Below are positions 2,042-48,341 of a DNA stretch of 64,000 nucleotides, one piece after another. The stretch is taken from assembly GCF_902713615.1 (NCBI RefSeq), contig NC_052168.1:496001-560000 (forward strand), read 5' to 3'. How positions within the stretch are numbered: position 1 is the stretch's first letter; every line of letters starts with the position of its first letter. The position numbers were made by a program, and so were the translations under genes. Source of the stretch: Scyliorhinus canicula. Taxonomy: Eukaryota. A model generated the notes under the pieces. The model was given only the letters and a program-made list of their open reading frames with translations, ran no database searches and was not told where the DNA came from.

Positions 2042-2125
2042 CCGTCTTTCAGGAAAATCGTCATCATCCTCCTCAATAACCTCCCTCTCAGACAGGATTG
2101 TATCTCCGGTAATGTCATCAGTTTC
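2042..2125 (-). CDS. DKK3/DKKL1: Dickkopf-3/DKKL1-like gene, third visible coding exon (ETDDITGDTILSEREVIEEDDDDFPERR)
   Basis: Acceptor ttttattttag, donor CGG|gtttgt, 84 nt, phase 0-0; resembles DKK3 ITNNQTGQMVFSETV...EEGRRSH and DKKL1 MTDNKTGEVLISE; joins in frame to exon 21146-21280. Confidence 0.8.
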
Positions 2126-2726
2126 CTAAAATAAAATACAAAAAGCTCAGAATGTTACTGATAGAATAACACAAATGGTTTGTGAAAAATTCCCACAGAA
2201 TATGTTCAAACCCACATGCCAGACATCGGTAACCTTACCAGCAAAGAGTGATTTAATGTTACCAGTTTGTCTGAGATAGATTGTGTGAAGAGATTGGCAT
2301 CAACATTTAATCCAGACAAACTGTAGAAAAGTAAAACAGACAGAAATTTGTTTCTGTCAGTCTATAATTACTTTGAGATATTAGCAAGTTCATGAATACA
2401 GGTTTTTTAGTATCACTGTGCTCTACCATTCTCAGAGATGGGTGAAGTTATTGTTTGTGAAAATGATCATGTACAGGTTGATGATACCGTTACCTTCACA
2501 CCATCTGCAAAGTGCTTCAACCTGTACCTCCTTCATTTCCACTTCCCACACAAACCTTCCTTGAGTTTGACCGAAGAAAACTGGCACATTAATACTGCAA
2601 GAAATTTGGATGAGTGACAGAAAGACACGCCCCTTACTGATGATAATTATTGTTGGCAACATGCAGATACTCTTTTCCTTCATTTCAAACTGAACACAAA
2701 CACAGATACAAAATGTGAAAATTAGG

Positions 2727-4850
2727 AACATAGAACATTACAGCGCAGTACAGGCCCTTCGGCCCTTGATGTTGCGCCGACCTGTGAAACTCCTCAAAAG
2801 CCCATCTACACTATTTCCTTATCATCCATATGCCTATCCAATGACCATTTAAATGCCCTTAGTGTTGGCGAGTCCACTACTGTTACAGGCAGGGCATTCC
2901 ACACCCTTACTACTCTCTGAGTAAAGAACCTACCTCTGACATCTGTCCTATATCTATCTCCCCTCAATTTAAAGCGATGTTCCCTCATGCTGGACATCAC
3001 CATCCGAGGAAAAAGGCTCTCATTGTCCACCCTATCTAATCCTCTGATCATCTTGTATGCCTCAATTAAGTCACCTCTTAACCTTCTTCTCTCTAATGAA
3101 AACAGCCTTAAGTCCCTCAGCCTTTCCTCATAAGATCTTCCCTCCATACCAGGCAGCATCCTGGTAAATCTCCTCTGCACCCTTTCCAATGCTTCCACAT
3201 CCTTCCTATAATGCAGCGACCAGAATTGCACGCAATACTCTAAATGTGGCCGCACCAGAGTTTTGTACAGCTGCAACATGACTTCATGGCTCCGAAACTC
3301 AATCCCTCTACCAATAAAAGCTAACACACCGTACGCCTTCTTAACAACCCTCTCAACCTGGCTGGCAACTTTCAGGGATCTATGTACATGGACACCGAGA
3401 TCTCTCTGCTCATCCACACTACCAAGAATCTTACCATTATCCCAGTACTCTGTCTTCCTGTTATTCCTTCCAAAATAAATTACCTCACACTTTTCTGCAT
3501 TAAACTCCATTTTCCACCTCTCAGCCCAGCTCTGCAGCTTATCTATGTCACTCTGTAACTTGTAACATCCTTCTGCACTGTCTACAATTCCACCGACTTT
3601 AGTGTCATCTGCAAATTTACTCACCCATCATTCTACGCCATCTCCAGGTCATTTATAAAAATGACAAACAGCAGTGGCCCCAAAACAGATCCTTGTGGTA
3701 CACAGGGCCGGCTCAAGGCACCGGCAACTCGGGCTGTCGCCCGGGGCGCCATGTGCTCGGGGGCGCCAGAGACTCGGTCCCGCGCATGCGCAGTTGGGCC
3801 GGTGCCAACCAGCGCATGCGCGGTGGCCCCCCGGCTCGCTCCGCCCCCCCCGCTCGGTCCCCCCCCCCGCCCCCCTCGGGTCCGCCCCCCTGCCCCGCCC
3901 TCGGGTCCGCCCCCCCGCCCCGCCCTCGGGTCCGCCCGCCCCCCGCGTCCGCCCCCCCGCGTGTCCACCCCCCCCGCGGGTCCGCCCCTCCTCGGCCCCG
4001 CCCCCCCTCGGGTCCGCCCCTCCTCGGCCCCGCCACCCCGCCTCGCCCCCCCCCCCCCCGCCCCCCCCCCTCGGCCCCGCCCCCCCTCGCCCCCCCCCCC
4101 CTCGGCCCCACCCCCCCTCGGCCCCGGCCCCGCCCCCCCCAGCCCCCCCCCGGCCCCGCCCCGCCCCAAGGGCGCCGAAGTTCAGCTTGCTCGGGGCGCC
4201 AGCAACCCTAGAGCTGGCGCTGGTGGTACACCACTAGTAACTGGACTCCAGGCTGAACATTTTCCATCAACCACCACCCTCTGTCTTCTTCCAGCTAGCC
4301 AATTTCTGATCCAAACTGCTAAATCACCCTCAATCCCCAGCCTCCGTATTTTCTGCAATAGCCTACCGTGGGGAACCTTATCAAACGCTTTACTGAAATC
4401 CATATACACCACATCAACTGCTTTACCCTCGTCCACCTGTTTGGTCACCTTCTCAAAGAACTCAATAAGTTTTGTGAGGCACGACCTACCCTTCACAAAA
4501 CCATGTTGACTATCTCTAATCAAATTATTCCTTTCCAGGTGATTATACATCCTATCAATTATAAACCTTTCCAATACTTTGCCCGCAACAGAAGTAAGGC
4601 TCACTGGTCTATAGTTACCGGGGTTATCTCCACTCCCCTTCTTGAACAAGGGGACAACATTTGCTATCCTCCAGTCTTCTGGCACTATTCCTGTAGCCAA
4701 TGATGACATAAAGATCAAAGCCAAAGGCTCAGCAATCTCCTCCCTAGCTTCCCAGAGAATCTTAGGATAAATCCCATCCCAGGGGATTTATCTATTTTAA
4801 CACTTTCCAGAATCGTTAACACCTCCTCCTTATGAACCTCAAACCCTTCT
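2727..4850 (-). mobile_element. CR1-clade LINE (HER1-like), 5'-truncated ORF2 RT region, interrupted by a hAT MITE
   Basis: ORFs 4182-4724 and 2806-3624 carry NYRPVSLTS, QHGF, DFSKAFDKVPH, VPQGSVLGP, KFADDTK; 3' tail ...TGTTCTATGTTC; close sister copy at 25127-26963. Confidence 0.95.
3703..4222. mobile_element. Non-autonomous hAT DNA transposon (MITE) with C-rich internal repeats
   Basis: 8-bp TSD GTGGTACA (3695-3702, 4223-4230); TIRs CAGGGCCGGCTCAAGG / CAGCGCCAGCTCTAGG (13/16); sister LINE has a single GTGGTACA near 26114. Confidence 0.9.
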
Positions 4851-5889: not shown

Positions 5890-7978
5890 GCCAGGCCCTT
5901 GCAGGATGACTTTGGCAATCTTCTATAGCGGGTTAAGATCAACATAGGATTTGTGGCTCAGTTAAACACAGCTGGTTGTAGATCACAGAGGGTTTAATGG
6001 ATTGTTTTATTCTTGTATCTCAGTGTCACTGGTAGGATGACTTTCACGGGAGGGTTAAACCTCCTGCCACTTATCGGGATTCTATGATCGATGTTAGCTG
6101 CCAAAATGCCTGTATTCCAAACGGAGAGCCAAGGTCTTTATCCTCACCCAAAAAGCTGTCTCGGGGCTTATGTGAATTTCAGAGTTTTTGCCCTGCACAG
6201 TTTGCTTTAATGTCCAATCCTATGGCACTGATAGCCTGAACTTGCTTAGCATGATGTAGCCTGTGGGGGCGCTCTGTTCCACAGCATTGGAATGGTGGTT
6301 CTTGCTGGCTGGTTTGGGTATGGATGTCCCTGGCCTGGAATGCCCCGTGCCTGTGTTTCTGGATGAGCTGAACTGTGGGATGGTCTCTGCACCAGTTTAT
6401 TTTATCCCCTTAAAATGGTTGTGCACGTCACAGAGTTCTGACTGCCTATCGATCTGGATTACACCTGCCTTTGCTTGGATGCCACATGCCCGTCTTCTCC
6501 CCACCCCAGGCACATTGGGATAAAGATACTTTCCACAAATCAGCTTAACATGACATAAACTTATTGAAATCAGCATGACCAGTGGTGCAGGACATCACAC
6601 TCATATTACTGACCAACAGATCTCGGGACAGAGTAAAAACTGACCAACAGATCTCGGGACACAGTAAAAACTGACCAACAGATCTCAGGACACAGTAAAA
6701 ACTGACCAACAGATCTCGGGACACAGTAAAAACTGACCAACAGATCTCAGGACACAGTAAAAACTGACCAACAGATCTCAGGACACAGTAAAAACTGACC
6801 AACAGATCTCAGGACACAGTAAAAACTGACCAACAGATCTCAGGACACAGTAAAAACTGACCAACAGATATCAGGACACAGTAAAAACTGACCAACAGAT
6901 CTCAGGACACAGTAAAAACTGACCAACAGATCTCAGGACACAGTAAAAACTGACCAACAGATCTCAGGACACAGTAAAAACTGACCAACAGATCTCAGGA
7001 CACAGTAAAAACTGACCAACAGATCTCAGGGCACAGTAAAAACTGACCAGATCTCAGGACACAGTAAAAACTGACCAACAGATCTCAGGACATAGTAAAA
7101 ACTGACCAACAGATCTCAGGACACAGTAAAAACTGACCAACAGATCTCAGGACACAGTAAAAACTGACCAGATCTCAGGACACAGTAAAAACTGACCAAC
7201 AGATCTCAGGACACCGTAAAAACTGACCAACAGATCTCAGGACACAGTAAAAACTGACCAACAGATCTCAGGACATAGTAAAAACTGACCAACAGATCTC
7301 AGGACACAGTAAAAACTGACCAACAGATCTCAGGACACAGTAAAAACTGACCAACAGATCTCGGGACACAGTAAAAACTGACCAACAGATCTCAGGACAC
7401 AGTAAAAACTGACCAACAGATCTCAGGACACAGTAAAAACTGACCAACAGATCTCAGGGCAAAGTAAAAACTGACCAACAGATCTTGGGACACAGTAAAA
7501 ACTGACCAACAGATCTCAGGGCACAGTAAAAACTGACCAACAGATCTCAGGACACAGTAAAAACTGACCAGATCTCAGGACACAGTAAAAACTGACCAGC
7601 AGATCTCAGGACACAGTAAAAACTGACCAACAGATCTCGGGACACAGTAAAAACTGACCAACAGATCTCAGGACATAGTAAAAACTGACCAACAGATCTC
7701 GGGACACAGTAAAAACTGACCAACAGATCTCAGGACACAGTAAAAACTGACCAACAGATCTCGGGACACAGTAAAAACTGACCAACAGATCTCAGGACAC
7801 CGTACAAACTGACCAACAGATCTCAGGGCACAGTAAAAACTGACCAACAGATCTCAGGGCACAGTAAAAACTGACCAACAGATCTCAGGACACAGTAAAA
7901 ACTGACCAGCAGATCTCAGGACACAGTAAAAACTGACCAACAGATCTCAGGACACAGTAAAAACTGACCAACAGATCT

Positions 7979-8180
7979 CAGTAAGTAGTCTTACAACACC
8001 AGGTTAAAGTCCAACAGGTTTGTTTCGAATCACTCGCTTTCGGAGCACAGCTCCTTCCTCAGGTGAATCATTCACCTGAGGAAAGCTAGTGATTCGAACC
8101 AAACCTGTTGGACTTTAACCTGGTGTTGTAAAGACTTCTTACTGTGCCCACCCCAGCCCAGTGCCCACATCTCCACACCA
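7979..8180. mobile_element. Penelope-like element terminus as an inverted (palindromic) pair
   Basis: Arms 7979-8068 and 8070-8144 are inverted about C8069, followed by a tail on one arm; CAGATCTCAG duplicated on both sides; hammerhead motif inside. Confidence 0.75.
8031..8065 (-). ncRNA. Minimal type I hammerhead ribozyme motif (probably inactivated)
   Basis: CAC-CTGAGGA-A-GGAGC tgt GCTCC-GAAA-GCGA-GTG: CUGANGA and GAAA cores, 5-bp helix II, CAC/GTG helix I; cleavage-site U replaced by G relative to the sister arm (GAAAGCTAGTG). Confidence 0.65.
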
Positions 8181-9399
8181 CAGATCTCAGGACATAATAA
8201 AAACTGACCAACAGACCTCGAGGCACAGTAAAAACTGACCAACAGATCTCAGGACACAGTAAAAACTGACCAACAAATCTCAGGACACAGTAAAAACTGA
8301 CCAACAGATCTCAGGACACAGTAAAAACTGACCAGATCTCAGGGCACAGTAAAAACTGACCAACAGATCTCAGGACACAGTAAAAACTGACCAGATCTCG
8401 GGACACAGTAAAAACTGACCAACAGATCTCAGGACACAGTAAAAACTGACCAACAGATCTCAGGGCACAGTAAAAACTGACCAGATCTCAGGACACAGTA
8501 AAAACTGACCAACAGATCTCAGGGCATAATAAAAACTGACCAACAGACCTCGAGGCACAGTAAAAACTGACCAACAGATCTCAGGACACAGTAAAAACTG
8601 ACCAACAGATCTCAGGACACAGTAAAAACTGACCAGATCTCAGGGCACAGTAAAAACTGACCAACAGATCTCAGGACACAGTAAAAACTGACCAACAGAT
8701 CTCGGGACACAGTAAAAACTGACCAGATCTCAGGACACAGTAAAAACTGACCAACAGATCTCAGGACACAGTAAAAACTGACCAACAGACCTCGAGGTAC
8801 AGTAAAAACTGACCAGATCTCAGGACACAGTAAGAACTGACCAACAGACCTCGAGGCACAGTAAAAACTGACCAACAGATCTCAGGACACAGTAAAAACT
8901 GACCAACTGATCTCAGGACATAGTAAAATCTACATATGCCAAGAAAATACAAGAGAAATGTGCAAACAGGTAAAAAGGGTTAAAAGATGTGCAGAGCAGG
9001 AGCTCTCGAAAACACAGCCACCCGCACTCATATCAGATGACCCCCCCACCTAGGAGTTAAGATTTTTAAGTCTACACATTCACAACCTTCTTCCATTCTG
9101 TGCACTGACCTCTGGCATAACGAGACAATGCTAACTGGAGTAAGCAACCTTTAAACACACCTGAAGTAACTGCGAGGACATTTTCACACGCCGCTGAGTA
9201 ACATTTTTTTTTAAAGATTTACACTAATGAGTATTCAAGACATGTAACACATATGAGCTCACTAAAGGTCAGCATGAAGCCCACCGTGCTGCTAGCTGAA
9301 CCCACCAATGGGAAATTGAAGTTTTGCACACTGCCCATCAGTCACCATATATTTCCTGCTTTTAAAATCAAACTCCGACAAGTCTTACAGTCCCAGCAA

Positions 9400-17682: not shown

Positions 17683-20520
17683 AGCTGGAGCCGAGCAGTA
17701 GGCCCGGAGCCCAGCAGCAGGCCCGGAGCCCAGCAGCAGGCCCGGAGCCCAGCAGGAGGCCCGGAGCCCAGCAGGAGGCCCGGAGCCCAGCAGCAGACCC
17801 GGAGCCCAGCAGGAGGCCCGGAGCCGGAGCTCAGCAGCAGGCCCGGAGCCCAGCAGGAGGCCCGGAGCCCAGCAGCAGGCCCGGAGCTGGAGCCCAGCAG
17901 CAGGCCCGGAGCCCAGCAGGAGGCCCGGAGCCCAGCAGCAGGCCCGGAGCCCAGCAGCAGACCCGGAGCCCAGCAGGAGGCCCGGAGCCCAGCAGGAGGC
18001 CCGGAGCCCAGCAGCAGGCCCGGAGTCCAGCAGCAGGCCCGGAGCCCAGCAGCAGGCCCGGAGCCCAGCAACAGGCCCGGAGCCCAGCAGCAGACCCGGA
18101 GCCCAGCAGCAGGCCCGGAGCCCAGCAGCAGGCCCGGAGCTGGAGCCCAGCAGCAGACCCGGAGCCCAGCAGCAGACCCAGAGCCGGAGCCCAGCAGCAG
18201 GCCCGGAGCTGGAGCCCAGCAGCAGACCCAGAGCCCGGAGCCCAGCAGCAGGCCCGGAGCTGGAGCCCAGCAGCAGGCCCGGAGCCCAGCAACAGGCCCG
18301 GAGCCCAGCAACAGGCCCGGAGCCGGAGCCCAGCAGCAGACCCGGAGCCCAGCAGCAGGCCCGGAGCCCAGCAGCAGGCCCGGAGCTGGAGCCCAGCAGC
18401 AGACCCAGAGCCCGGAGCCCAGCAGCAGGCCCGGAGCCCGAGCCCAGCAGCAGGCCCGGAGCCCAGCAACAGGCCCGGAGCCGGAGCCCAGCAGCAGGCC
18501 CGGAGCCCTGCAGCAGGCCCGGAGCCCGGAGCCCAGCAGGAGGCCCAGAGCCAGAGCCCAGCAGCAGACCCAGAGCCGGAGACCAGCAGCAGACCCAGAG
18601 CCGGAGACCAGCAGCAGACCCGGAGCCCAGCAGCAGGCCCGGAGCCAGAGCCCAGCAGCAGGCCCGGAGCCCAGCAGCAGACCCAGAGCCCAGAGCCCAG
18701 CAGCAGGCCCGGAGCCAGAGCCCAGCAGCAGGCCTGGAGCCCAGCAGCAGGCCCGGAGCCCGGAGCCCAGCAGCAGGCCCGGAGCCCAGCAGCAGACCCA
18801 GAGCCCGGAGCCCAGCAGGAGGCCCAGAGCCGGAGACCAGCAGCAGACCCAGAGCCGGAGACCAGCAGCAGGCCCAGAGCTGGAGCCCAGCAGCAGGCCC
18901 GGAGCCCAGAGCCCAGCAGCAGGCCCGGAGCCAGAGCCCAGCAGCAGGCCCGGAGCCCAGCAGCAGACCCAGAGCCGGAGCCCAGCAGCAGGCCCGGAGC
19001 CCAGCAGCAGGCCCGGAGCCCAGCAGCAGGCCCGGAGCCCAGCAACAGGCCCGGAACCGGAGCCCAGCAACAGGCCCGGAGCTGGAGCCCAGCAGCAGGC
19101 CCGGAGCCCAGCAGCAGACCCGGAGCCCAGCAGCAGACCCGGAGCCCAGCAGCAGGCCCGGAGCCCAGCAACAGGCCCGGAGCCCAGCAGCAGGCCCGGA
19201 GCCCAGCAGCAGGCCCGGAGCCCAGCAGGAGGCCCGGAGCCCAGCAACAGGCCCGGAGCCCAGCAACAGGCCCGGAGCCGGAGCCCAGCAGCAGACCCGG
19301 AGCCCAGCAGCAGGCCCGGAGCCCAGCAGCAGGCCCGGAGCTGGAGCCCAGCAGCAGACCCAGAGCCCGGAGCCCAGCAGGAGGCCCGGAGCCCAGCAGC
19401 AGGCCCGGAGCCCGGAGCCCAGCAGCAGGCCCGGAGCCCAGCAGCAGACCCAGAGCCCGGAGCCCAGCAGGAGGCCCAGAGCCAGAGCCCAGCAGCAGGC
19501 CCGGAGCCCGGAGCCCAGCAGCAGGCCCGGAGCCCAGCAGCAGACCCAGAGCCGGAGACCAGCAGCAGACCCGGAGCCGGAGCCCAGCAGCAGACCCGGA
19601 GCCCAGCAGCAGGCCTGGAGCCCAGCAGCAGGCCCGGAGCCCGGAGCCCAGCAGCAGGCCCGGAGCCCAGAGCTGGAGCCCAGCAGCAGACCCAGAGCCC
19701 AGAGCCCAGCAGCAGGCCCGGAGCCAGAGCCCAGCAGCAGGCCTGGAGCCCAGCAACAGGCCCGGAGCCCAGCAACAGGCCCGGAGCCGGAGCCCAGCAG
19801 GAGGCCCGGAGCCCAGCAGCAGGCCCGGAGCCCAGCAGCAGGCCCGGAGCCCAGCAGCAGGCCCGGAGACCAGCAGCAGGCCTGGAGCCCAGCAGCAGAC
19901 CCAGAGCCGGAGACCAGCAGCAGGCCCGGAGCCCAGAGCTGGAGCCCAGCAGCAGACCCAGAGCCCAGAGCCCAGCAGCAGGCCCGGAGCCAGAGCCCAG
20001 CAGCAGGCCTGGAGCCCAGCAGCAGGCCCGGAGCCCGGAGCCCAGCAGCAGGCCCGGAGCCCAGCAGCAGACCCAGAGCCCGGAGCCCAGCAGGAGGCCC
20101 AGAGCCAGAGCCCAGCAGCAGACCCAGAGCTGGAGCCCAGCAGCAGACCCAGAGCCCAGAGCCCAGCAGCAGGCCCGGAGCCAGAGCCCAGCAGCAGGCC
20201 CGGAGCCCAGCAGCAGGCCCGGAGCCCAGCAGCAGGCCCGGAGCCCAGCAGCAGGCCCAGAGCTGGAGCCCAGCAGCAGGCCCGGAGCCCAGCAACAGGC
20301 CCGGAGCCCAGCAACAGGCCCGGAGCCCAGCAGCAGGCCTGGAGCCCAGCAGCAGACCCAGAGCCGGAGACCAGCAGCAGACCCGGAGCCCAGCAGCAGG
20401 CCCGGAGCCGGAGACCAGCAGCAGGCCCGGAGCCAGAGCCCAGCAGCAGGCCCGGAGCCCAGCAGCAGACCCAGAGCCGGAGACCAGCAGGAGGCCCGGA
20501 GCCCAGCAGCAGGCCTGGAG
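17683..20520. repeat. GC-rich composite minisatellite, core 19 bp GCCCGGAGCCCAGCAGCAG with optional 6-7 bp inserts
   Basis: Direct inspection, about 2.8 kb. Confidence 0.97.
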
Positions 20521-26963: not shown

Positions 26964-27057
26964 TCTCAGAGTGCTGCGGGGCTAGAGGAGATTACAGATA
27001 TAGGGAGCAGTGAAGACATGGGATTTGAAAACAAGGAATCAAGATATAATTCAGGTA

Positions 27058-28790: not shown

Positions 28791-29573
28791 AACTAAGGAA
28801 AGATCAGAATCAGACAATAATGTAGAGATGGAAATAAGCAGGCTTATTAATGGGGTTGATGTGTGGTCAGAGCTCATTTTGAGGCATATTTGCTTCAGCC
28901 TTCAAGACATTTACTGAGGAAAGGGTATGAAACCTAACTGGAATCCAGCCTATATTGCAGCTGTTCCATTTATCAAATTGCTGTTTATCCCTTTAAATTT
29001 CTGATCCTTCCTTTCAATTCTACCACTCCAAATTTCTGTCCGTTTATTTCTCTTTATTTGATCATTTCATCTCGATCTGTCTGTCTCTCTTCCTTACCTC
29101 CCAATCTCCGTCTCCCAATACTCACTTCCTCCATTTAAATTGTCTTTTTTCTGCCTCATTCCCATTTCCCTCTTATACTCTTTTTGTTTTGAAAGCATCC
29201 AACCTACTGGTCTCACCTATTTCCTGTGGTAACAAATCACACATTGGAACCATTCAGATGTGAATCCGAAACATTCATTCCACATCTACCCTGTACAACC
29301 TATTCATAATTTTAAAGATTTCTGTCAGGTCTTTTCAAAGTTTTTCTCATCAAAAGAAAATTGGCCCAACTTGTATCTTTCCGCAATAGTTATAATGTTC
29401 TTTGTTCTAGTAGCATCTTTGTGGATGTTTTTTGTACTTTCTGCACTGTTTCTATATCCTTTCAACAGTTCAGAGATCGGAACTAATCACAGACCTGACC
29501 CAGGTTCCTACACAATTTTATCCTGTTTCTCTATGTTTAAAATTCACTGAGTATGGGACCCCGATTTCACCAG

Positions 29574-30317: not shown

Positions 30318-33300
30318 CCCAATCCCTGGGCTGCTGGATCCAATCCCCGTAGCTGGATCCAATCCCTGGGTCGCTGGATCCAGTGCCCGGGCCGCTGGAT
30401 CCAATCCCCGGGTCGCTGGATCCAGTGCCCGGGCCGCTGGATCCAATCCCCATAGCTGGATCCAGTACCAGGGCCGCTGGATCCAGTGCCCGGGCCGTTG
30501 AATTCAGTGCCTGGGGTGCTGGATCCAGTGCCTGGGCCGCTGGATCCAATACCCGGGCCGTGGATCCAGTTCCCGGGCCACTGTATCCAATCCCCGGGCT
30601 GCTGGATCCAATCCCCGGCCGCTGGATCCAGTGCCCGGGTCGCTGGATCCAATCCCCGGGCCGCTGGGTCCAATCCCTGGGCCCCTGGATCCAAGACCCG
30701 GGCCGCTGGATCCAATCCATGGATCGCTGGATCTAATCCCCACCCCGCTGGATCCAATCCTCGGGCCGTGGATCCGGTTCCCGGGCCGCTGGATCCAGTG
30801 CCCGGGCCGCTGGATGTAATCCAAGGGCCGCTGGATCCAGTGCCCGAGCCGCTGGATCCAATCCCTGGGCCGCTGGATCCAGTGTTCGGTCCCCAGGATC
30901 CAATCCCCGGGCCGCTGGATCCAGTGACCGGGCCGCTGGATCCAATCCCAAAGCAGTGGATCCAGTTCCCGGGCCGCTGGATCCAATCCCCGGGCCGCTG
31001 GATCCAATCCCTGGGCCGCTTGATCCAGTGCCCGGGCCGCTGGATCTAATCCCCGGCCTGCTGGATCCAGTGACCTGGCCGCTGGATCCAATCCCAAAGC
31101 CATGGATCCAGTTCCCGGGCCGCTGGATCCAATCCCTGGGCCGCTGGATCCAGTGCCCGGGCCACTGGATCCAATCCCTGGGCTGCTGGATCCAGTGCAC
31201 GGGCCGCCGGATCCAATCCACGGCCGCTGGATCCTATACCCGGGCCGCTGGATCCAGTACCTGGGCCGCTGGATCTAATCCCTGGGCCGCTGGATCCAGT
31301 GCCTGGGCCGCTGGATCCAATCCCTGGGCCGCTAGATCCAGTGTCCGGGCCGCTGGATCCAATCCCAGGGCCGCTGGATCCAATCCCCGGGCCGCTGGAT
31401 CCTGTGACCGGGCCGCTGGATCCAATCCCAAAGCCGTGGATCCAGTTCCCGGGCTGCTGGATCCAATCCCCGGGCCGCTGGATCCAGTGCCCGGGCCGCT
31501 GGATCCAATCCCCGGCCCGCTAGATCTAGTGCCCGGGCCGCTGGATCCAACACCCGGGCTGCTGGGTCCACATGCCCGGGCTGCTGGATCCAATCCCCGG
31601 CCACTGGATCCAATCCCTGGGTCGCTTGATCCAGTGCCCAGGCCGCTGGATCTAATCCCTGGGCCGCTGGATCCAATCCCAGGGCCGCTGGATCCAATCC
31701 CCGGGCCGCTGGATCCAGTGTTCAGGCCGCTGGATCCAATAACAGGGCCGCTGGATCCAGTATCCGTGCAGCTGGATCCAATCCCTGGGCAGCTGGATCC
31801 AGTGCCCAGGTCACTGGATCCAATCCTAGGGTTGCTGGATCCAGTGCCCGGGCCGCTGGATCCAATCCCAGGGTCGCTGGATCCAATCCCTGGGCCGCTG
31901 GATCCAGTGCCCAGGCCACTGGATCCAATCCCAGGGCCGCTGGATCCAGTGCCCGGGCCGCTGGATCCATTCCCAGGGTCGCTGGATCCAGTGCCCAGGC
32001 CGCTGGATCTAATCCCCGGGCCGCTGGATCCAATCCCCGGTCGCTGGATCCAATGTTCGGGCCGCAGGATCCAATCCCTTGGCCGCTGGATCCAGAGCCC
32101 ATGCCACTGGATCCAATCCCAGGGCCGCTGGATCCAATCCCCGGGCCGCTGGATCCAATCCCCGGGCCGCTGGATCCAGTATTCGGGCCGCTGGATACAA
32201 TCCCTGGGCCGCTGGATCCAGTGCCCAGGCCACTGGATACAATCCACGGGCTGCTGGCTCCAGTTCCCGGGACGCTGGATCCAGTCCCCGGGCCGCTGGA
32301 TCCAATCCTCGGGACGCTGGATCCAATCCCTGGGCCGCTGGATCCAGTGCCCGGGCCGCTGGAACCAATCCCAGGGCCGCTGGATCCAGTGCCCAGGCCG
32401 CTGGATCCAATCCCAGGGCCGCTGGATCCAATCCCTGGGCCGCTGGATCCAGTGTCCGGGCCGCTGGTTCCAGTGTCCGGGCTGCTGGATCCAATCCCCG
32501 GGCCACTGGATCCAATCCCAGGGCCGCAGGATCCAGTGCCCTGTCCGCTGGATCCAATCCCTGGGCCGCTGGATCCAGTGCCCTGGCCACTGGATCCAAT
32601 CCCAAGGCCGTTGGATCCAGTGCCCGGGCCACTGGATCCAATCCCAGGGCCGCTGGATCCAATCCCCGGGCCGCTGGATCCAATCCCCGGGCCGCAGGAT
32701 CCAGTGTTTGGACCGCTGGATCCAGTATCCGGGCCGCTGGATCCAATCCGAGTGCCGCAGGATCCAGTGCATGGGCCGCTGGATCCAATCCCTGGGCTGC
32801 TGGATCCAGTGCCCAGGCCACTGGATCCAATCCCAGGGCCGCTGGATCCAGTGCCCGGGCCACTGGATCCAATTGCAGGGTTGCTGGATCCAGTGCCCGG
32901 GCCGCTGGATCCAATCCCTGGGCCGCTGGATCCAGTGCCCAGGCCACTGGATCCAATCCTAGGGTCGCTGGATCCAGTGCTCAGGCCACTGGATCCAATC
33001 CTAGGGTCGCTGGATCCAGTGCCCGGGCCGCTGGATCCAATCCATGGGTCGCTGGATCCAATCCCTGGGCCGCTGGATCCAGTGCCCAGGCCACTGGATC
33101 CAATCCCAGGGCCGCTGGATCTAGTGCCCGGGCCGCTGGATCCAATCCCAGGGTCGCAGGATCCAGTGCCCAGGCCGCTGGATCTAATCCCCGGGCCACT
33201 GGAACCAATCCCCGGGTCGCTGGATCCAGTGTTTGGGCCGCTGGATCCAATCCCTGGGCCACTGGATCCAATCCCCTGGCTGCTGGATCCAGTGCCCAGG

Positions 33301-34522
33301 CCGCTATATCCAATTCCTGGGCAGCTGGATCCAATCCCAGGGCCGCTGGATCCAATCCCAGGGCCGCTGGATCCAGTGTCCGGGCCGCTGGAACCATTGT
33401 CTGGACCGCTGGATCCAGTGTCCGGGCTGCTGGATCCAATCCCTGGGCCACTGGATCCAATCCCTGGGCCGCTGGATCCAGTGCCCAGGCCACTGGATCC
33501 AATCCCATGGCCGCTGGATCCAGTGCACGGGCCGCTGGATCCAATCCCTGGGCCGCTGGATCCAGTGCCCGGGCCACTGGATCCAATCCCAGGGTCGCTG
33601 GATCCAATCCCAGGGCCGCTTGATCCATTCCCCGGTCCGCTGGATCCAATCCCCGGGCCGCAGGATCCAGTGTTCGGGCCGCTGGATCCAATCCCAGGGC
33701 CGCTGGATCCAGTATCCGGGCCGCTGGATCCAATCCGAGGGCCGCTGGATCCAGTGCACGGGCCGCTGGATCCAATCCCTGGGCCACTGGATCCAGTGCC
33801 CAGGCCACTGGATCCAATCCCAGGGCCGCTGGATCCAGTGCCCGGGCCGCTGGATCCAGTGCCCGGGCCGCTGGATCCAATCCCTGGCCGCTGGATCCAG
33901 TGCCCAGGCCACTGGATCCAATCCTAGGGTCGCTGGATCCAGTGCTCAGGCCACTGGATCCAATCCTAGGGTCGCTGGATCCAGTGCCCGGGCCGCTGGA
34001 TCCAATCCCAGGGTCGCTGGATCCAATCCCTGGGCCGCTGGATCCAGTGCCCAGGCCACTGGATCCAATCCCAGGGCCACTGGATCTAGTGCCCGGGCCG
34101 CTGGATCCAATCCCAGGGTCGCAGGATCCAGTGCCCAGGCTGCTGGATCTAATCCCCGGGCCACTGGAACCAATCCCCGGGTCGCTGGATCCAGTGTTCG
34201 GGCCGCTGGATCCAATCCCTGGGCCACTGGATCCAATCCCCTGGCTGCTGGATCCAGTGCCCAGGCCGCTATATCCAATTCCTGGGCCGCTGGATCCAAT
34301 CCCAGGGCCGCTGGATCCAATCCCAGGGCCGCTGGATCCAGTGTCCGGGCCGCTGGAACCATTGTCTGGACCGCTGGATCCAGTGTCCGGGCTGCTGGAT
34401 CCAATCCCTGGGCCACTGGATCCAATACCAGGGCCGTTGTATCCAGTGCCCGGGCCACTGGATCCAATCCCAGGGTCGCTGGATCCAGTCCCAGGGACGC
34501 TTGATCCAGTATCCGGGCCGCT
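30318..34522. repeat. 21-bp GC-rich minisatellite GGGCCGCTGGATCCA(ATCCCN/GTGCCC), about 200 units, runs into a gap
   Basis: Direct inspection; BamHI site in most units. Confidence 0.97.
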
Positions 34523-35022
34523 NNNNNNNNNNNNNNNNNNNNNNNNNNNNNNNNNNNNNNNNNNNNNNNNNNNNNNNNNNNNNNNNNNNNNNNNNNNNNN
34601 NNNNNNNNNNNNNNNNNNNNNNNNNNNNNNNNNNNNNNNNNNNNNNNNNNNNNNNNNNNNNNNNNNNNNNNNNNNNNNNNNNNNNNNNNNNNNNNNNNNN
34701 NNNNNNNNNNNNNNNNNNNNNNNNNNNNNNNNNNNNNNNNNNNNNNNNNNNNNNNNNNNNNNNNNNNNNNNNNNNNNNNNNNNNNNNNNNNNNNNNNNNN
34801 NNNNNNNNNNNNNNNNNNNNNNNNNNNNNNNNNNNNNNNNNNNNNNNNNNNNNNNNNNNNNNNNNNNNNNNNNNNNNNNNNNNNNNNNNNNNNNNNNNNN
34901 NNNNNNNNNNNNNNNNNNNNNNNNNNNNNNNNNNNNNNNNNNNNNNNNNNNNNNNNNNNNNNNNNNNNNNNNNNNNNNNNNNNNNNNNNNNNNNNNNNNN
35001 NNNNNNNNNNNNNNNNNNNNNN
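34523..35022. other. Assembly gap (500 N)
   Basis: N run; the round size suggests a placeholder. Confidence 1.
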
Positions 35023-35550: not shown

Positions 35551-36720
35551 GTTTAGCCCACTGTGCTAAACCAGCCCCTATCCAGTTCCACTTATTTTAT
35601 GATGTGGTAAATGCTTCATTATCTAAAATGTGATCTGGGTAACTGCCTAGGTCCAACATTGCGGAATCTTCTGAGTTATTCAGTACCAATCTCATTCATT
35701 CCCATTTTCCACACTTGGCTTCTGAAGGTGCAGTTCTGTGGGTTCCTAGAAAATTAGTGCTGGCGGGCTATTTGACAATAGGTATCATCCTAGCTAACTA
35801 ATTCTGTTGACCTGATGTCCAATCACAAACTTCCTATCTGGAGCTGTTGAAAATGATTAGTAATGGGAAGTCTGTCCTCATTAGAGGAGCGGGAATTGTG
35901 GCAGCCTCTACACCACTTGAGCAACAACGAAAGCACATCCACCAGGTGCATCACTTTTATCTAGAAAAGGGGCCTCGAGTTGTGCGAGTACTGCTCGGTT
36001 TACAGCTGTGATCTCGTCTTCACACGTTACAGACAAGTTCTTTGATCCACCTTAGTTCACTCAGCCATTGTCAGGCTAATAATAATGTTGATCTTTGAAC
36101 CTCCTCCACCTCTTCTGTCTTCACCTCAACCCTCTCAATGTTATTTAGAAAATGTCATTTTGTTTTCCTGTTTATGACCAGTTCTTTATATTTGTCTATC
36201 TCTAGCCGAGTAGTAATACTCACTATTTGCTGTCAGAGTTGCTCAATTAAACATAACTTAAAACTGATTAAGTGTTCATTGCAGTGTGTTTGATCTTGCT
36301 GTCCACACTTTGTCCCCTGTTGGTTGTCATATCGAGCAGACAATAATTCAGATGTTCAGCTTGAAGTGCCTTGCAAATTCTGAAAAGTCCAATTGTAAAT
36401 AAATGCTTTTCCTCCACATTAAATTTCCTCAGTGACTGACATTCTGACCAACTAATTACATCATTTCCGAGCCACTTTCTCTGAATCTACTGTCTACATT
36501 TCACTGGGTTACTGTACATTAGAAACAGGACGGGTCTCAGTACCAAATCCTGTAATCCCACTTCCGATTCCCATACTCTCTCCTCCACTCAGTACAGTCT
36601 CACCCAGACATTAAAAACTTAAAATATTGGAAATACTCTGTGGGGAGATTTATGTTCAGGTCAATGATCGTTAATCAGAACTGGAAAGAGTTCTAAAGCA
36701 AGTTTAGATGCAGAGAAAGC

Positions 36721-39700
36721 TGGGTGGGGTAGATAGGGACAGGGTGGGGTAGATAGGGACAGGGTGGGGTAGATAGGGACGGGATGGGGTAGATAAGGAC
36801 AGGGTGGGGTAGGACAGGGTGGGGTAGGACAGGGTGGGGTAGATAGGGACAGGGTGGGGTAGATAGGGACAGGGTGGGGTAGATAGGGACGGGGTGGGGT
36901 AGATAGGGACAGGGTGGGGTAGATAGGGACGGGGTGGGGTAGATAGGGACGGGGTGGGGTAGATAGGGACAGGGTGGGGTAGATAGGGACAGGCAGGGGT
37001 AGATAGGGACAGGGTGGGGTAGATAGGGACAGGGTGGGGTAGATAGGGACAGGGTGGGGTAGATAGGGACAGGCTGGGGTAGATAGGGACAGGGTGGGGT
37101 AGATAGGGACAGGGTGGGGTAGATAGGGACAGGGTGGGGTAGATAAGGACAGGGTGGGGTAGATAAGGACAGGGTGGGGTAGATAAGGACAGGGTGGGGT
37201 AGATAGGGGACAGGGTGGGGTAGATAGGGACAGGGTGGGGTAGATAAGGACAGGGTGGGGTAGATAGGGAAGGGGTGGGGTAGATAGGGACAGGGTGGGG
37301 TAGATAGGGACAGGGTGGGGTAGGACAGGGTGGGGTAGATAAGGACAGGGTGGGGTAGATAGGGACAGGGTGGGGTAGATAGGGACAGGGTGGGGTAGAT
37401 AAGGACAGGGTGGGGTAGGACAGGGTGGGGTAGATAGGGACAGGGTGGGGTAGGACAGGGTGGGGTAGGACAGGGTGGGGTAGGACAGGGTGGGGTAGAT
37501 AGGGACAGGGTGGGGTAGATAGGGACAGGGTGGGGTAGATAGGGACAGGGTGGGGTAGATAAGGACAGGGGTGGGGAAGATAAGGACGGGGTGGGTAGAT
37601 AGGGACGGGGTGGGGTAGATAGGGACGGGGTGGGGTAGATAGGGACGGGGTGGGGTAGATAGGGACGGGGTGGGGTAGGACAGGGTGGGGTAGATAGGGA
37701 CGGGGTGGGGTAGATAGGGACAGGGTGGGGTAGATAGGGACAGGGTGGGGTAAATAGAGACAGGGTGGGGTAGATAGGGACGGGGTGGGGTAGATAGGGA
37801 CGGGGTGGGGTAGATAGGGACGGGGTGGGGTAGATAGGGACGGGGTGGGGTAGATAGGGACGGGATGGGGTAGATAAGGACAGGGTGGGGTAGATAAGGA
37901 CAGGGTGGGGTAGATAAGGACAGGGTAGGGTAGATAGGGACAGGGTGGGGTAGATAGGGACAGGGTGGGGTAGATAGGGACAGGGTGGGGTAGATAGGGA
38001 CAGGGTGGGGTAGATAAGGACAGGGGTGGGGAAGATAAGGACGGGGTGGGGTAGATAGGGACGGGGTGGGGTAGATAGGGACGGGGTGGGGTAGATAGGG
38101 ACGGGGTGGGGTAGATAGGGACGGGGTGGGGTAGATAGGGACGGGGTGGGGTAGGACAGGGTGGGGTAGATAGGGACGGGGTGGGGTAGATAGGGACAGG
38201 GTGGGGTAGATAGGGACAGGGTGGGGTAAATAGAGACAGGGTGGGGTAGATAGGGACGGGGTGGGGTAGATAGGGACGGGGTGGGGTAGATAGGGACGGG
38301 GTGGGGTAGATAGGGACGGGGTGGGGTAGATAGGGACAGGGTGGGGTAGATAGGGACAGGGTGGGGTAGATAGGGACAGGGTGGGGTAGGACAGGGTGGG
38401 GTTGATAAGGACAGGGTGGGGTAGATAGGGACAGGGTGGGGTAGATAGGGACGGGGTGGGGTAGATAGGGACAGGGTGGGGTAGATAGGGACGGGGTGGG
38501 GTAGATAGGGATGGGGTGGGGTAGATAAGGACGGGGTGGGGTAGATAGGGACAGGGTGGGGTAGATAGGGACAGGGTGGGGTAGATTGGGACAGGGTGGG
38601 GTAGATAGGGACAGAGTGTGGTAGATAGGGACAGGGTGGGGTAGGACAGGGTGGGGTTGATAAGGACAGGGTGGGGTTGATAAGGACAGGGTGGGGTAGA
38701 TAGGGACAGGGTGGGGTAGATAGGGACAGGGTGGGGTAGATAGGGACAGGGTGGGGTAGATAGGGACAGGGTGGGGTAGATAGGGACAGGGTGGGGTAGA
38801 TAGGGACAGGGTGGGGTAGATAAGGGCGGGGTGGGGTAGATAGGGACGGTGTGGGGTAGATAGGAACGGGGTGGGGTAGATAGGGACGGGGTGGGGTAGA
38901 TAGGGACGGGGTGGGGTAGATAGTGACAGGGTGGGGTAGATAGGGACAGGGTGGGGTAGATAGGGACAGGGTGGGGTAGATAGGGACGGGGTGGGGTAGA
39001 TAGGGACAGGGTGGGGTAGATAGGGACAGGGTGGGGTAGATAGGGACAGAGTGTGGTAGATAGGGACAGGGTGGGGTAGGACAGGGTGGGGTTGATAAGG
39101 ACAGGGTGGGGTAGATAGGGACAGGGGTGGGGTAGATGGGACAGGGTGGGGTAGATAGGGACAGGGTGGGGTAGATAGGGACAGGGTGGGGTAGATAGGG
39201 ACAGGGTGGGGTAGATAGGGACAGGGTGGGGTAGATAGGGACAGGGTGGGGTAGATAGGGACAGGGGTGGGGTAGCTAGGGACGGGGTGGTGGTAGATAA
39301 GGCGGGGTGGGGTAGATAGGGACGGGGTGGGGTAGATCATGGCCAGGGGTAGGGTAGATAGGGACAGGGTGGGGTAGATATGGACAGGGTGGGGTATAGG
39401 GACAGGAGTGTGGGTAGATAGGGACAGGGTGGGGTAGGACAGGGTGGGGTTGATAAGGACAGGGTGGGGTAGAAGGGGACAGGGGGGGGTAGATAGGGAC
39501 GGGGTGGGGTAGATAAGGGACGGGGTGGGGTAGATAGGGACAGGGTGGGGTAGATAGGGACGGGGTGGGGTAGATAGGACGGGGTGGGGTAGATAGGGAC
39601 AGGGTGGGGTAGATAGGGACAGGGTGGGGTAGATAGGGACAGGGTAGGGTAGATAGGGACAGGGTGGGGTAGATAGGGACAGGGTGGGGTAGATAGGGAC

Positions 39701-39739
39701 AGGGTGGGGTAGATAAGGACAGGGTGGGGTAGATAGGGA
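36721..39739. repeat. 20-bp G-rich minisatellite GGGTGGGGTAGATAGGGAC(A/G) with 15-bp variants, about 150 units
   Basis: Direct inspection. Confidence 0.97.
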
Positions 39740-39742
39740 GGA

Positions 39743-39985
39743 TCTGTGTGGAGTCTTCACATTCTCCCCGTGTGTGCGTGGGTTTCCTCCAGGTGCTCCG
39801 GTTTCCTCCCACAGTCCAAAGATGTGCAGGTTAGGTGGATTGGCCATGCTAAATTGTCCCTTTAGTGTCCAAAAAAGGTTAGGTGGGGATACAATGGAGG
39901 TGTGGGCTTGGGTAGGGCGCTCTTTCCAAGGGCTGGTGCAGACTCGATGGGCTGAATGGCCTCATTCTGCACTGTAAATTTTGTA
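39743..39985 (+). mobile_element. 5'-truncated V-SINE abutting the G-rich array
   Basis: V core and GGGCTGAATGGCCTC tail. Confidence 0.88.
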
Positions 39986-40495: not shown

Positions 40496-40627
40496 NNNNN
40501 NNNNNNNNNNNNNNNNNNNNNNNNNNNNNNNNNNNNNNNNNNNNNNNNNNNNNNNNNNNNNNNNNNNNNNNNNNNNNNNNNNNNNNNNNNNNNNNNNNNN
40601 NNNNNNNNNNNNNNNNNNNNNNNNNNN
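40496..40627. other. Assembly gap
   Basis: N run. Confidence 1.
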
Positions 40628-41127: not shown

Positions 41128-41161
<34 letters not shown>

Positions 41162-42191
41162 GAGGGTGTGTGTGTTGAGTGGGTGTGTGTGTGTGGAGGG
41201 TCTGTGTGTGTGTGTGTGTGGGGNNNNNNNNNNNNNNNNNNNNNNNNNNNNNNNNNNNNNNNNNNNNNNNNNNNNNNNNNNNNNNNNNNNNNNNNNNNNN
41301 NNNNNNNNNNNNNNNNNNNNNNNNNNNNNNNNNNNNNNNNNNNNNNNNNNNNNNNNNNNNNNNNNNNNNNNNNNNNNNNNNNNNNNNNNNNNNNNNNNNN
41401 NNNNNNNNNNNNNNNNNNNNNNNNNNNNNNNNNNNNNNNNNNNNNNNNNNNNNNNNNNNNNNNNNNNNNNNNNNNNNNNNNNNNNNNNNNNNNNNNNNNN
41501 NNNNNNNNNNNNNNNNNNNNNNNNNNNNNNNNNNNNNNNNNNNNNNNNNNNNNNNNNNNNNNNNNNNNNNNNNNNNNNNNNNNNNNNNNNNNNNNNNNNN
41601 NNNNNNNNNNNNNNNNNNNNNNNNNNNNNNNNNNNNNNNNNNNNNNNNNNNNNNNNNNNNNNNNNNNNNNNNNNNNNNNNNNNNNNNNNNNNNNNNNNNN
41701 NNNNNNNNNNNNNNNNNNNNNNNNNNNNNNNNNNNNNNNNNNNNNNNNNNNNNNNNNNNNNNNNNNNNNNNNNNNNNNNNNNNNNNNNNNNNNNNNNNNN
41801 NNNNNNNNNNNNNNNNNNNNNNNNNNNNNNNNNNNNNNNNNNNNNNNNNNNNNNNNNNNNNNNNNNNNNNNNNNNNNNNNNNNNNNNNNNNNNNNNNNNN
41901 NNNNNNNNNNNNNNNNNNNNNNNNNNNNNNNNNNNNNNNNNNNNNNNNNNNNNNNNNNNNNNNNNNNNNNNNNNNNNNNNNNNNCGGGGCTGTAGCCTGT
42001 CAGCCCTGTGGCTGTACAGGACGGTCCTGTCAATCTCCCTCTGTTTTGTGTGTAATTTGCGGGTATTCCATGCGGTGCCGGTGCTAGCCCCTCCCCGGTA
42101 GCCGGATCGGTGCAGGCTTGGTGCCGATTTTACTGTCGTGGAACTCCACAGATTGGCCACCACTTAGATGCAGGAATGGAAAATCCAGCCC
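40701..42191. mobile_element. GC-rich non-autonomous DNA transposon-like element with (TG)n and an internal gap
   Basis: Imperfect TIRs GGGCAGAATTCTCC / GGAAAATCCAGCCC; superfamily (possibly PIF/Harbinger) not established. Confidence 0.5.
41224..41984. other. Assembly gap
   Basis: N run. Confidence 1.
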
Positions 42192-45119: not shown

Positions 45120-45520
45120 AATGCAGATTCTGATTTCAATAGAGCTTTTAACAACCACCAAACATCCCAAAATGCTTCACGGCCAATGACATGTTGTTAT
45201 GTTGCGATGTAGGAAAGACAGCAATGTGATAAGATGAGATAATCTGATGATTTATTTTGTGATGTTGATTGACAATGAAATATTGACCAGGACACCAGGG
45301 ACAACTCCCTTGCCCATTGTTGAAAAAGTGACATGCAATCTTTTACATTCACCTCCAAGGAAAGATGGGCCTCTGGTTTCAAGTTTCATCAGAAAGATAG
45401 CAGCTTCAACAGTGTAGTGTTCCCTTGGTACTGCACTGGAGTGTCACTCGATCTTCATACTCCAGTCTGAGGGTGAGACCTTAACTCATAACCTTGTGAT
45501 TCAGAGGGAAGAGCTGACAA
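45120..45520 (-). mobile_element. DeuSINE (SacSINE/AmnSINE1-related) copy
   Basis: Minus strand TGCAGTACCAAGGGAACACTACACTGTTGAAGCTGC...GGTGTCCTGGTCAATATTT resembles the Deu domain as recalled. Confidence 0.7.
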
Positions 45521-46283: not shown

Positions 46284-46587
46284 TAATAATCTTTAATATT
46301 GTCACAAGTAGGCTTACATTAACACTGCAATGAAGTTACTGTGAAAAGCCCCTAGTCGCCACATTTCCAGAGCCTGTTCGGGTACACAGAGGGAGAATTC
46401 AGAATGTCCAATTCACCTAACAGCACGTCTTTCAGGGCTTGTGGGAGGAAACCGGAGCACCCGGAGGAAACCCACGCAGACACGGGGAGAACGTGCAGAC
46501 TCCACACAGACAGTGACCCAAGCTGGGAATCCAACCTGGGACCCTGGAGCTGTGAAGCAACAGTGCTAACCACTGTGCTACCGTGCA
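46284..46587 (-). mobile_element. Full-length V-SINE with ATT-rich tail
   Basis: tRNA head, V core and shared tail. Confidence 0.9.
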
Positions 46588-48139
46588 GCCATAACTAAAA
46601 CCAATTCCATTAACTACACTAACATTCATAGTTTTTAATACCAGGGGTCAACAATACCATCAGTTCCCTGATCATTCAGGGATTTCTACTGCAACATGTA
46701 TTTATATAATGCCGTTAAAATGTCCCATGACAGATTTGGATGTTAAGGCTCCAATCAGATCAGCCACAGTCTTATTGAAAGATCAAGCAGGCTCGATGGG
46801 CCAAATGGCCTTTTCCAGCTCCTATTTCTTGTATGGCTTCACAAGAGCATCATGAAGTAAATTTAACACCAAGCCATAGAAGGAGATACACGGCAGGTGA
46901 CCAAAAGATTATTGTAAAGAGGACAGTTTTAAAATGAGGTAGACTGGCAGAGAGAATTTCCGAGCTTTGGTAGTGTAAGGAAGGCCACTGATTGTGGAAT
47001 GATTGGGGAATGATTGGGGATGTTTAAGTGGCCAGAATTAGATTAGCGCAGATAACTTTGGAGGAATTCTCCTGAATGGAGTTGTTTAAGAGAGAGTCTG
47101 CACTCCTTTAATGAAAACCTAATGATAATATAATAGAGGCCCTATTAATGGGCTGCCTTATGCTATTCTCTATACAGAGAGAGAAAGGTGGGGACACCTA
47201 ACATATCTTTGGCTAACGATCAAAGGAAACTAAATTCAATAGCACCTGAAAATGGGCGTGGGGATCCATAATGAAACAAATGATGTTTCCAAGGAGCTGA
47301 GGTCATGGACATGTGGATAGATGGATGGAAAGAGCAATATTACTGGATAACTAACTGGAAAACCTCAAGAGATCACGAGCCTTTGAGATCAGGATACGTT
47401 GTGAAGTGACCGAATGTAGCTCCTCCCTGATGGCCTGTTTGGTTAAGGAGTTATAGACTAAACCACAATGGCCTAAATGGTTACAAACATGTCTCGGTGT
47501 CGGATTAATTCATTTATTCGAAGAAATCTCAGGTGAATGGAAAACCCTTTCCCCTTACTTGATACTCCTGGTGTTTTTAGTGAATGTTACTTTCCAGTTG
47601 TGTGAAAATTGTCTAAATTTTCCTGGAATGCAAGTCTCCGACTGGTCTGGTGCTGCTTCAGTTTTGACATTTTACTTGTAGCTGTGGCAGAGCTAGGCAA
47701 TAGAGATACTGGCCTGTAATGAAAATCAAGGAGGTAATTGTTGAGGGTAAAAATATAAATTTATTTCACAAACCATTAACAGGCAGATTATTTCTCAGCT
47801 GGCAATCTTCTTGTTATTCTCGTTGTTTCATTGCATCTCCCAATCACTGACTCCCATTTCCTTCTGTCCACTTTCTGCAAGTTAATTGCAGGATTTCTTG
47901 AGGTTGAGAGCAGAAGAAAGAGGCCAAAGGAGAAGGAATAGAAATAACCTGAAAATGTGGTTGTAGCAGCTGGACCCTTAGACCAATATTGTGTTCCTAA
48001 TGAAACAGTACAAACCCATTTCATGTTGAAGTGCATTTTTTCAAACGTATTTACCGGTTCCTGAACTTGTATTTTCTGTATTCGCTCAGATGTGCTGTGC
48101 TGCCCTCCAAGTTGTAGCTTGGAGACCCTCACAGTTAAA

Positions 48140-48341
48140 ATTGAGACAGCCGGCTGGAGCGAGGGCGGAAGCCCTGACCATGACTCTGACACAATGAGTG
48201 ATTCACTGGAGAAGAGTTTGGACAGTGAAGCAGAGGGAGTGTGGAGTCCTGACATCGAGCAGAGCTTCCGGGAAGCATTAGCCATCTACCCACCATGTGG
48301 CCGGCGGAAAATTATCCTATCAGATGAAGGAAAAATGTACG
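48140..48341 (+). CDS. TEAD1/TEAD2: TEAD/TEF-1 family transcription factor, first coding exon (exon 48090-48341, inferred AUU start at 48140); TEAD1-like in sequence, TEAD2-like in synteny
   Basis: [68 protein letters not shown], the start of the TEA domain; acceptor ttcgctcag ending 48089; donor G|gtgagt in phase 1 at the conserved MYG junction. Confidence 0.95.

Follow-up and report, generated by a model that had tools for sequence, protein, structure and literature searches.

Background

Amniote DKKL1 (Soggy) is a testis and acrosome protein, about 240 aa long in human. The Soggy region is the part of DKK3 that resembles DKKL1, and no function is known for the Soggy domain (PMC10778571). 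In mouse, Soggy is called antipodal to TEAD-2 in the title of Kaneko and DePamphilis (2000), cited in PMC10778571, and in alligator and turtle DKKL1 lies upstream of CCDC155 (PMC10967326). Here we analyse a stretch of 64,000 nucleotides (the window) from the catshark Scyliorhinus canicula, corresponding to positions 496,001-560,000 of contig NC_052168.1 (C23), in which a minus-strand gene for a small Soggy-domain protein and a plus-strand TEAD gene point away from each other. It is highly probable that the window represents the cartilaginous-fish version of the TEAD2-DKKL1 divergent pair.

The window lies about 0.5 Mb from the start of the 27.7-Mb contig, in a genome of 4.22 Gb assembled into 646 contigs; its G+C content is 50% and it contains 3 runs of N. 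The proteins that match it most closely come from catshark and other sharks. Positions are those of the window unless they carry a prefix for a contig (C) or a sequence piece (L). The locus had been singled out in a reading made from the sequence alone (the original prediction), which took it for the TEAD2-DKKL1 block left by genome duplication.

Layout of the locus

The exons and a match of the open frame at 48092-48346 to the Pfam TEA domain (E 3.6e-7) confirmed that a Soggy-domain gene on the minus strand and a TEAD gene on the plus strand diverge. Their start codons, predicted to be about 24 kb apart, were measured at about 24.1-24.2 kb. The interval originally delimited, 2042-48341, runs from the last base of exon 3 of the DKKL1-like gene to the end of the first TEAD exon; these exon borders stood, but as a span of the locus the interval was too short, both genes running past the window and leaving the last DKKL1-like exon and ten TEAD exons outside it (Table 1). 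It was also borne out that no other recognisable gene separates the two, the DNA between them holding only fragments of long interspersed nuclear elements (LINE), satellites and weakly matching open reading frames (ORFs), and that three assembly gaps lie where they had been stated to be, none of which touches a coding exon. No CpG island was found at either promoter, and the idea of a CpG-island bidirectional promoter was dropped as unsupported.

The TEAD gene

The TEAD gene has 11 coding exons spread over about 52 kb, and a Scyliorhinus torazame protein named "TEF-1-like" mapped to all of them with 86-100% identity per exon. Four exon matches to the YAP-binding domain were located at C23:588.5-595.8 kb, and the composite of this domain was 98% identical to that of the S. 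torazame orthologue. Its product is a transcription factor of the Hippo pathway that combines a TEA domain for DNA binding with a YAP-binding domain.

A genome scan found TEAD at three loci only, one each on C9, C15 and C23. Likeness to solved TEAD structures was clear for a mammalian TEAD2 reference (P0130; 521 bits to human TEF-4 structures versus 354 bits to TEF-1), but crocodile TEAD2 was not separable from other TEADs in this way, and the identity of the window gene was therefore sought in a tree. A maximum-likelihood tree was built on the YAP-binding domain only (228 columns) with the three genome copies and named references. The window TEAD and seven chondrichthyan "TEF-1-like" proteins formed one clade (support 100/99), which was sister to the TEAD2 proteins of coelacanth (Latimeria), lungfish, newt, frog, caecilian, crocodile and mammals with a joint support of 99/95, whereas the C9 copy fell within TEAD1 (100/97) and the C15 copy within TEAD3 (100/97). 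Forcing the chondrichthyan clade to join TEAD1 made the tree 18 log-likelihood units worse and was rejected by the approximately unbiased (AU) test (p 0.0115). On the strength of this branch and the AU test, the phylogeny shows the predicted window TEAD to be an orthologue of TEAD2, as the original prediction, which had proposed a TEAD phylogeny including the shark paralogues, had supposed.

Like tetrapod TEAD2 (TEF-4), the gene has a TEA domain and a YAP-binding domain, falls in the TEAD2 clade and has DKKL1 as its neighbour. It is far less diverged than amniote TEAD2, its YAP-binding domain being 86% identical to those of frog and coelacanth TEAD2, and this small divergence accounts for the automatic label "TEF-1-like".

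Exon 2 (L028:2828-2894) contains two extra bases in the assembly, by which the frame is broken. Contigs from four public runs were compared with the assembly at this exon. The DNA contig set omitted one base at both L028:2856 and 2877, and two spliced RNA contigs (depth 105 and 22) omitted L028:2856 and departed from the assembly at 2877. With the two bases removed, exon 2 encodes the canonical TEA sequence, and exons 2-3 complete the domain. Since the DNA contigs had seven single-base insertions or deletions relative to the assembly in about 350 bases (L028:2650-2946, i.e. C23:562,650-562,946), two of them in exon 2, this part of the assembly looks poorly polished, and the two apparent frameshifts are assembly errors. 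The RNA contigs joined window positions 48311-48339 directly to exon 2 (C23:562,828), which proves splicing from the exon in the window as well as transcription; TEAD2 is thus intact and transcribed.

It was also noticed that after exon 3 the RNA contigs X25 and X42 (L028:3554 onward) carry a 4-residue insert before the next exon, which resembles the alternative micro-exon of TEAD1 and is absent from S. torazame isoform X2. No TEAD4-like locus was present among the three TEAD loci found in the genome; TEAD4 may have been lost or may be unassembled in this shark. A scan for the Tub family located a TULP gene on C15 just upstream of TEAD3 and none on C23, which is uninformative for TEAD2, and a TUB/TULP-type gene at C20:49.29-49.32 Mb had no TEAD match nearby.

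The DKKL1-like gene and its product

The minus-strand gene consists of four small coding exons across about 34 kb, four being also the number of coding exons in turtle DKKL1 (PMC10967326). Exons 1 and 2 were obtained by six-frame reading, and exons 3 and 4 were located only with the proteins of elasmobranch orthologues. The whole of exon 2 occurs in 18 small runs of this organism, which are probably RNA runs and come from 6 studies. The precursor has 103 aa and the mature part 82 aa, with a pI of 4.1, 28 acidic residues and no cysteine. As read from its letters, exon 1 encodes a hydrophobic leader of 21 aa, ending in AAPAAL, that is kept in the orthologues, and the product is accordingly expected to be secreted.

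With amniote DKKL1 the catshark gene shares the possession of a Soggy core as its only domain, with no cysteine-rich domains, and its leader would correspond to the signal peptide of that secreted protein; the C-terminal half of amniote DKKL1 is missing. With DKK3 it has the Soggy core in common, and each of the two diverges from a partner TEAD gene belonging to the TEAD1/TEAD2 lineage, but the catshark gene lacks cysteine-rich domains 1 and 2 (CRD1 and CRD2) and the N-terminal helical segment. A Pfam scan of the small protein matched no family, Pfam having no model for the Soggy domain, and the Soggy exon used as query against the whole genome found no match beyond itself. A scan of the genome for Dickkopf_N (Pfam) gave nothing on C23, and tblastn with the cysteine-rich exons of the catshark's own DKK3 and the cysteine-rich half of the Chanos protein found no cysteine-rich exon in the continuous 124 kb of C23:436,001-560,000. 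Filing the gene as DKK3 was ruled out by the absence of CRD1 (Dickkopf_N) and CRD2 after the Soggy domain. A description as "intermediate between DKK3 and DKKL1" was likewise rejected: with no cysteine-rich exon at all, the gene is Soggy-only, like DKKL1.

A database search with exon 2 retrieved eight short elasmobranch orthologues of 104-168 aa, and the exon was 100% identical to those of basking, white, whale and bamboo shark. In NCBI, the Amblyraja radiata and Hypanus sabinus proteins are named "dickkopf-like protein 1" and the Narcine protein "dickkopf-related protein 3-like", and those of whale, white, basking and bamboo shark are labelled "uncharacterized" or "hypothetical". The original prediction had held that DKKL1 is mostly described from mammals; this needs correction, as the gene has already been described in reptiles (PMC10967326) and carries its NCBI name in a skate and a stingray. 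Our literature search for DKKL1 in cartilaginous fish found no paper.

Outside the elasmobranchs, the elasmobranch profile matched a Chanos chanos protein named "dickkopf-related protein 3b" with E 8.5e-4 in a search of 5.8 billion sequences. In pairwise comparison the two were 51% identical over 41 aa (E 8e-13), and the aligned stretch directly precedes CRD1. These alignments show that the predicted DKKL1-like protein shares Soggy-domain homology with the N-terminal part of DKK3.

Alignment of four sharks and three batoids revealed 65 consecutive invariant residues. Between the window and thorny skate (L037), there are 19 synonymous and 3 non-synonymous changes in exons 2 and 3, corresponding to a non-synonymous rate (dN) of 0.011, a synonymous rate (dS) of 0.79 and a dN/dS of about 0.014, while the introns flanking the exons are only 52-58% alike in ungapped comparison. 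The DKKL1-like gene is therefore real and under strong purifying selection. In being near-invariant across sharks and rays the protein is unlike mammalian DKKL1, which diverges quickly. All seven of these species keep two adjacent basic residues (RR, KR or RK) where exon 3 ends, and this dibasic pair might be a processing site. Within intron 1, a block shared with whale shark (Table 1) is conserved beyond the surrounding intron.

Neighbouring genes and the sister block

Like mammalian and reptilian DKKL1, the catshark gene is transcribed away from TEAD2 and lies upstream of a KASH5-family gene (KASH5/CCDC155). On C23 this gene occupies the minus strand at 446-416 kb, its EF-hand_9 exon lying at 445.9 kb and its KASH_CCD exons further along at 425.2 and 416.5 kb. 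The only strong genomic match to PTH2 (TIP39) lies on the plus strand of C23, at 241,462-241,605. The order on C23 is thus PTH2, the KASH5-family gene and the DKKL1-like gene on the opposite strand from it, and then the divergent TEAD2, and it mirrors the human gene order. In order and orientation it also agrees with what is described for mouse (the title of Kaneko and DePamphilis 2000, cited in PMC10778571) and for reptiles (PMC10967326). A neighbourhood of the 19q13.33 type (DKKL1, KASH5, PTH2) is therefore present beside shark TEAD2. A PIH1 match on C23, 7 Mb away, adds weak support.

On C9, TEAD1 is located at 152.89-152.95 Mb on the minus strand and DKK3-type cysteine-rich exons at 153.79-153.83 Mb on the plus strand. 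The two are divergent and 0.87 Mb apart, compared with 24 kb between the small gene and its TEAD. DKK3 and TEAD1 form a known arrangement, which the C9 block matches. The window pair is therefore not the only TEAD/DKK pair in the genome, a separate TEAD1 and a cysteine-rich DKK3 being found together elsewhere. EF-hand_9 and KASH_CCD exons also occur at C11:107.44-107.45 Mb and C9:154.94-154.96 Mb, the latter at a distance of 1.1 Mb past DKK3, as would fit a duplicated block. These loci suggest that this shark has three paralogues of the KASH5 family, of which one belongs to the DKK3-TEAD1 block.

In the history that we propose, an ancestral block with a DKK3-like gene and a TEAD gene would have been duplicated in the early vertebrate genome duplications. 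The window pair would be one copy, its minus-strand gene being orthologous to DKKL1 by position and encoding a probably secreted Soggy core of the kind found in the N-terminal part of DKK3; the sister copy would be the DKK3-TEAD1 block on C9. The ohnologous block of the original prediction is supported in this respect by the TEAD tree, the sister block on C9, the order of KASH5 and PTH2, and the adjacency in other species described below.

Adjacency in other species and alternative readings

The catshark sequence itself shows no continuity across gap 1: its flanks, a satellite and unrelated unique DNA, are unlike each other, and its length is arbitrary. The adjacency could accordingly be an artefact of assembly, with the gap at 34523-35022 joining contigs that are not neighbours. 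In whale shark, however, the DKKL1-like orthologue and a TEAD gene for 457 aa are annotated head to head, with starts about 420 bp apart, in a locus free of N. This gap-free sequence aligns with the window in order and in one orientation at 23.8-24.3, 28.8-29.1 and 35.6-36.4 kb, i.e. on both sides of gap 1, and this colinearity supports the order and orientation across the gap. In elephant shark (Callorhinchus milii, MU249861.1), a divergent gene likewise lies about 7 kb upstream of the TEAD2 orthologue, and the single N of this locus falls inside the TEAD gene. The recurrence of the pair in whale shark and elephant shark, which answers the check in other chondrichthyans proposed with the original prediction, makes an assembly artefact very improbable. 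Within 10 kb, the skate DKKL1 locus showed no TEAD exon, and no gene was called within 10 kb upstream of frog TEAD2. The whale-shark comparison also suggests that TEAD2 may have untranslated 5' exons near the DKKL1-like gene; if so, all three gaps would be inside the TEAD2 transcription unit and not between the genes. That the locus is the TEAD1-DKK3 block, or that its TEAD is a decayed pseudogene, might be read from the NCBI label of the shark orthologues and from the two 1-base insertions in TEA exon 2. But TEAD1 and DKK3 are both on C9, the tree and the AU test reject TEAD1, and the read-derived contigs contradict the insertions, whose removal restores a canonical TEA domain in a poorly polished stretch; we regard both ideas as refuted, with a negligible chance of being correct.

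The identity of the small gene allows more room for doubt. It might have arisen within one lineage as a truncated copy of DKK3, or of a gene like DKK3, and have come to lie beside TEAD2, the amniote DKKL1 having arisen separately. Similarity alone cannot separate DKKL1 from DKK3, and the sole significant match outside the elasmobranchs is the teleost Dkk3b; the shark protein has no counterpart of the long C-terminal half of amniote DKKL1; and the elephant-shark gene with Dickkopf_N implies loss of domains at least within chondrichthyans. Against a separate origin, the position, the strand and the neighbours (TEAD2, the KASH5-family gene and PTH2) are as for amniote DKKL1 (PMC10967326), a true DKK3 with its cysteine-rich exons exists elsewhere beside TEAD1, and the ray and skate genes are called DKKL1 by the NCBI pipeline; among language-model clusters, too, the nearest are those of DKKL1, which we take as a lead only. 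We therefore consider a truncated DKK3 duplicate unlikely and prefer the assignment to DKKL1, in which position, orientation and domain content, and not a protein tree, point to one-to-one orthology with the amniote gene. Several observations nevertheless weigh against this assignment or against the reading of the locus as a whole. The catshark protein, at 103 aa, is less than half as long as the 222-aa DKKL1 of soft-shell turtle (PMC10967326) and, unlike amniote DKKL1, has no N-glycosylation sequon. The gene at the same position in elephant shark is annotated with 364 aa and Dickkopf_N, so that the gene at this place is not always Soggy-only. With respect to synteny, there are three KASH5-like loci (C11, C9 and C23), and the Pfam models match the C11 copy slightly better. 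Of the wider synteny that had been proposed for checking, the KASH5-family gene and PTH2 were found, but CD37 and SLC6A16 were not: neither of the right-flank pieces read, C23:600-610 and 620-630 kb, shows an exon of a tetraspanin or of an SLC6 gene. Gaps 2 and 3 are set in low-complexity DNA and could not be bridged.

Elephant-shark neighbour and history of the Soggy domain

The elephant-shark neighbour has the same position and strand relative to TEAD2 as the catshark gene. By annotation only, it apparently retains cysteine-rich domains, whereas the catshark gene is Soggy-only; its first 3 kb (L035:1-3045) contained only low-complexity sequence, in which the protein was unreadable. If the elephant-shark model is right, a full Dickkopf gene lay beside TEAD2 in the chondrichthyan ancestor, and the cysteine-rich part was lost in elasmobranchs and, independently, in amniote DKKL1. 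The turtle study also lists DKK3L, which has cysteine-rich domains and no Soggy domain (PMC10967326). Extending the argument, it is conceivable, although we put this at somewhat less than an even chance, that a full-length Dickkopf was linked to TEAD2 in the jawed-vertebrate ancestor, that its cysteine-rich domains were lost independently in elasmobranchs and in the amniote line, and that the elasmobranch remnant is a constrained, acidic secreted peptide of 82 aa with a dibasic site near its C-terminus and a function unlike that of the acrosomal DKKL1 of mammals.

Under the assignment to TEAD2 and DKKL1, both lineages would predate the split between cartilaginous and bony vertebrates, and the head-to-head arrangement would have been kept since. 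The annotation of shark "TEF-1-like" genes would be corrected to TEAD2 and that of the shark "uncharacterized LOC" to DKKL1, and DKKL1 itself could be modelled as the Soggy-only remnant of a DKK3 copy left beside TEAD2. The orthology assignment is sound and in part already present in automatic annotation; the locus is not a new kind of system. A near-invariant elasmobranch protein that consists of the Soggy domain alone offers a clean object for probing the function of this domain. The extreme conservation of this protein in elasmobranchs and the domain content of the elephant-shark gene appear to be most worth following.

Other features of the window

The coordinates of the exons, gaps, satellites and conserved blocks are collected in Table 1.

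Table 1. Coordinates of exons, conserved blocks, gaps and satellites at the catshark locus
Feature	Position	Strand	Remarks
TEAD2 first coding exon	48128-48341	plus	N-terminus and first half of TEA domain; donor after 48341
TEAD2 intron 1	48342-64000, continuing to C23:562,827	plus	exons 2-11 at C23:562.8-595.8 kb
DKKL1-like coding exon 1	23998-23936	minus	ATG, putative 21-aa signal peptide, GTAAGT donor; aligns to signal peptides of shark/ray orthologues (P0273-P0278)
DKKL1-like exon 2	21280-21146	minus	45 aa, phase 0, AG acceptor, GTAAGC donor; first half of Soggy core (LPLNYH...IDK)
DKKL1-like exon 3	2125-2042	minus	28 aa; second half of Soggy core and acidic run
DKKL1-like last coding exon	C23:485,975-485,946 (L027:9975-9946)		outside the window, 10 kb off; 9 codons and stop
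Exon 1 and promoter block of DKKL1-like gene	23830-24277		matches whale shark L038:9925-10375 (478 bases, 71% identical)
Conserved non-coding block, DKKL1-like intron 1	23092-23442		matches whale shark L038:10773-11126 (363 bases, 80% identical)
Two colinear conserved blocks left of gap 1	28813-29113		whale shark L038:7230-7292 and L038:6898-6953
Three colinear conserved blocks right of gap 1	35611-36405		whale shark L038:3477-3616, 2910-2980 and 2548-2721
Gap 1	34523-35022		500 N; satellite on left flank, unique DNA on right
Gap 2	40496-40627		132 N; poly-C on both flanks
Gap 3	41224-41984		761 N; TG microsatellite on left flank, non-repeat DNA on right
Satellite	6608-8928		31-base unit
Satellite	17687-20520		19/44-base unit
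Satellite	30319-34522		21-bp unit
Satellite	36722-39739		20-bp unit

In the two right-flank pieces of C23, only repeats and one ORF guessed to be MIR-domain-like were seen; the latter, at L031:3197-3478 (C23:623.2-623.5 kb) on the minus strand, resembles by eye only a MIR-domain (SDF2-like) exon. Nine further intergenic ORFs in the window had as their sole match a short phage baseplate-protein domain, below the cut-off. LINE reverse-transcriptase fragments lie between the genes at 25228-26981, and this copy, matched by Pfam RVT_1, appears with a second minus-strand fragment at 2809-4787 to belong to one LINE family. The likeness of the second copy was judged by eye only, its tested part (2809-3627) having no Pfam match, and it is split by a G-rich simple repeat at 3652-4233. 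The satellites give rise to spurious frames: the 20-bp satellite produces an "ATG" ORF of 1047 aa at 36704-39847, and three further spurious ORFs of about 1000 aa each are found at 17.4-20.5 kb.

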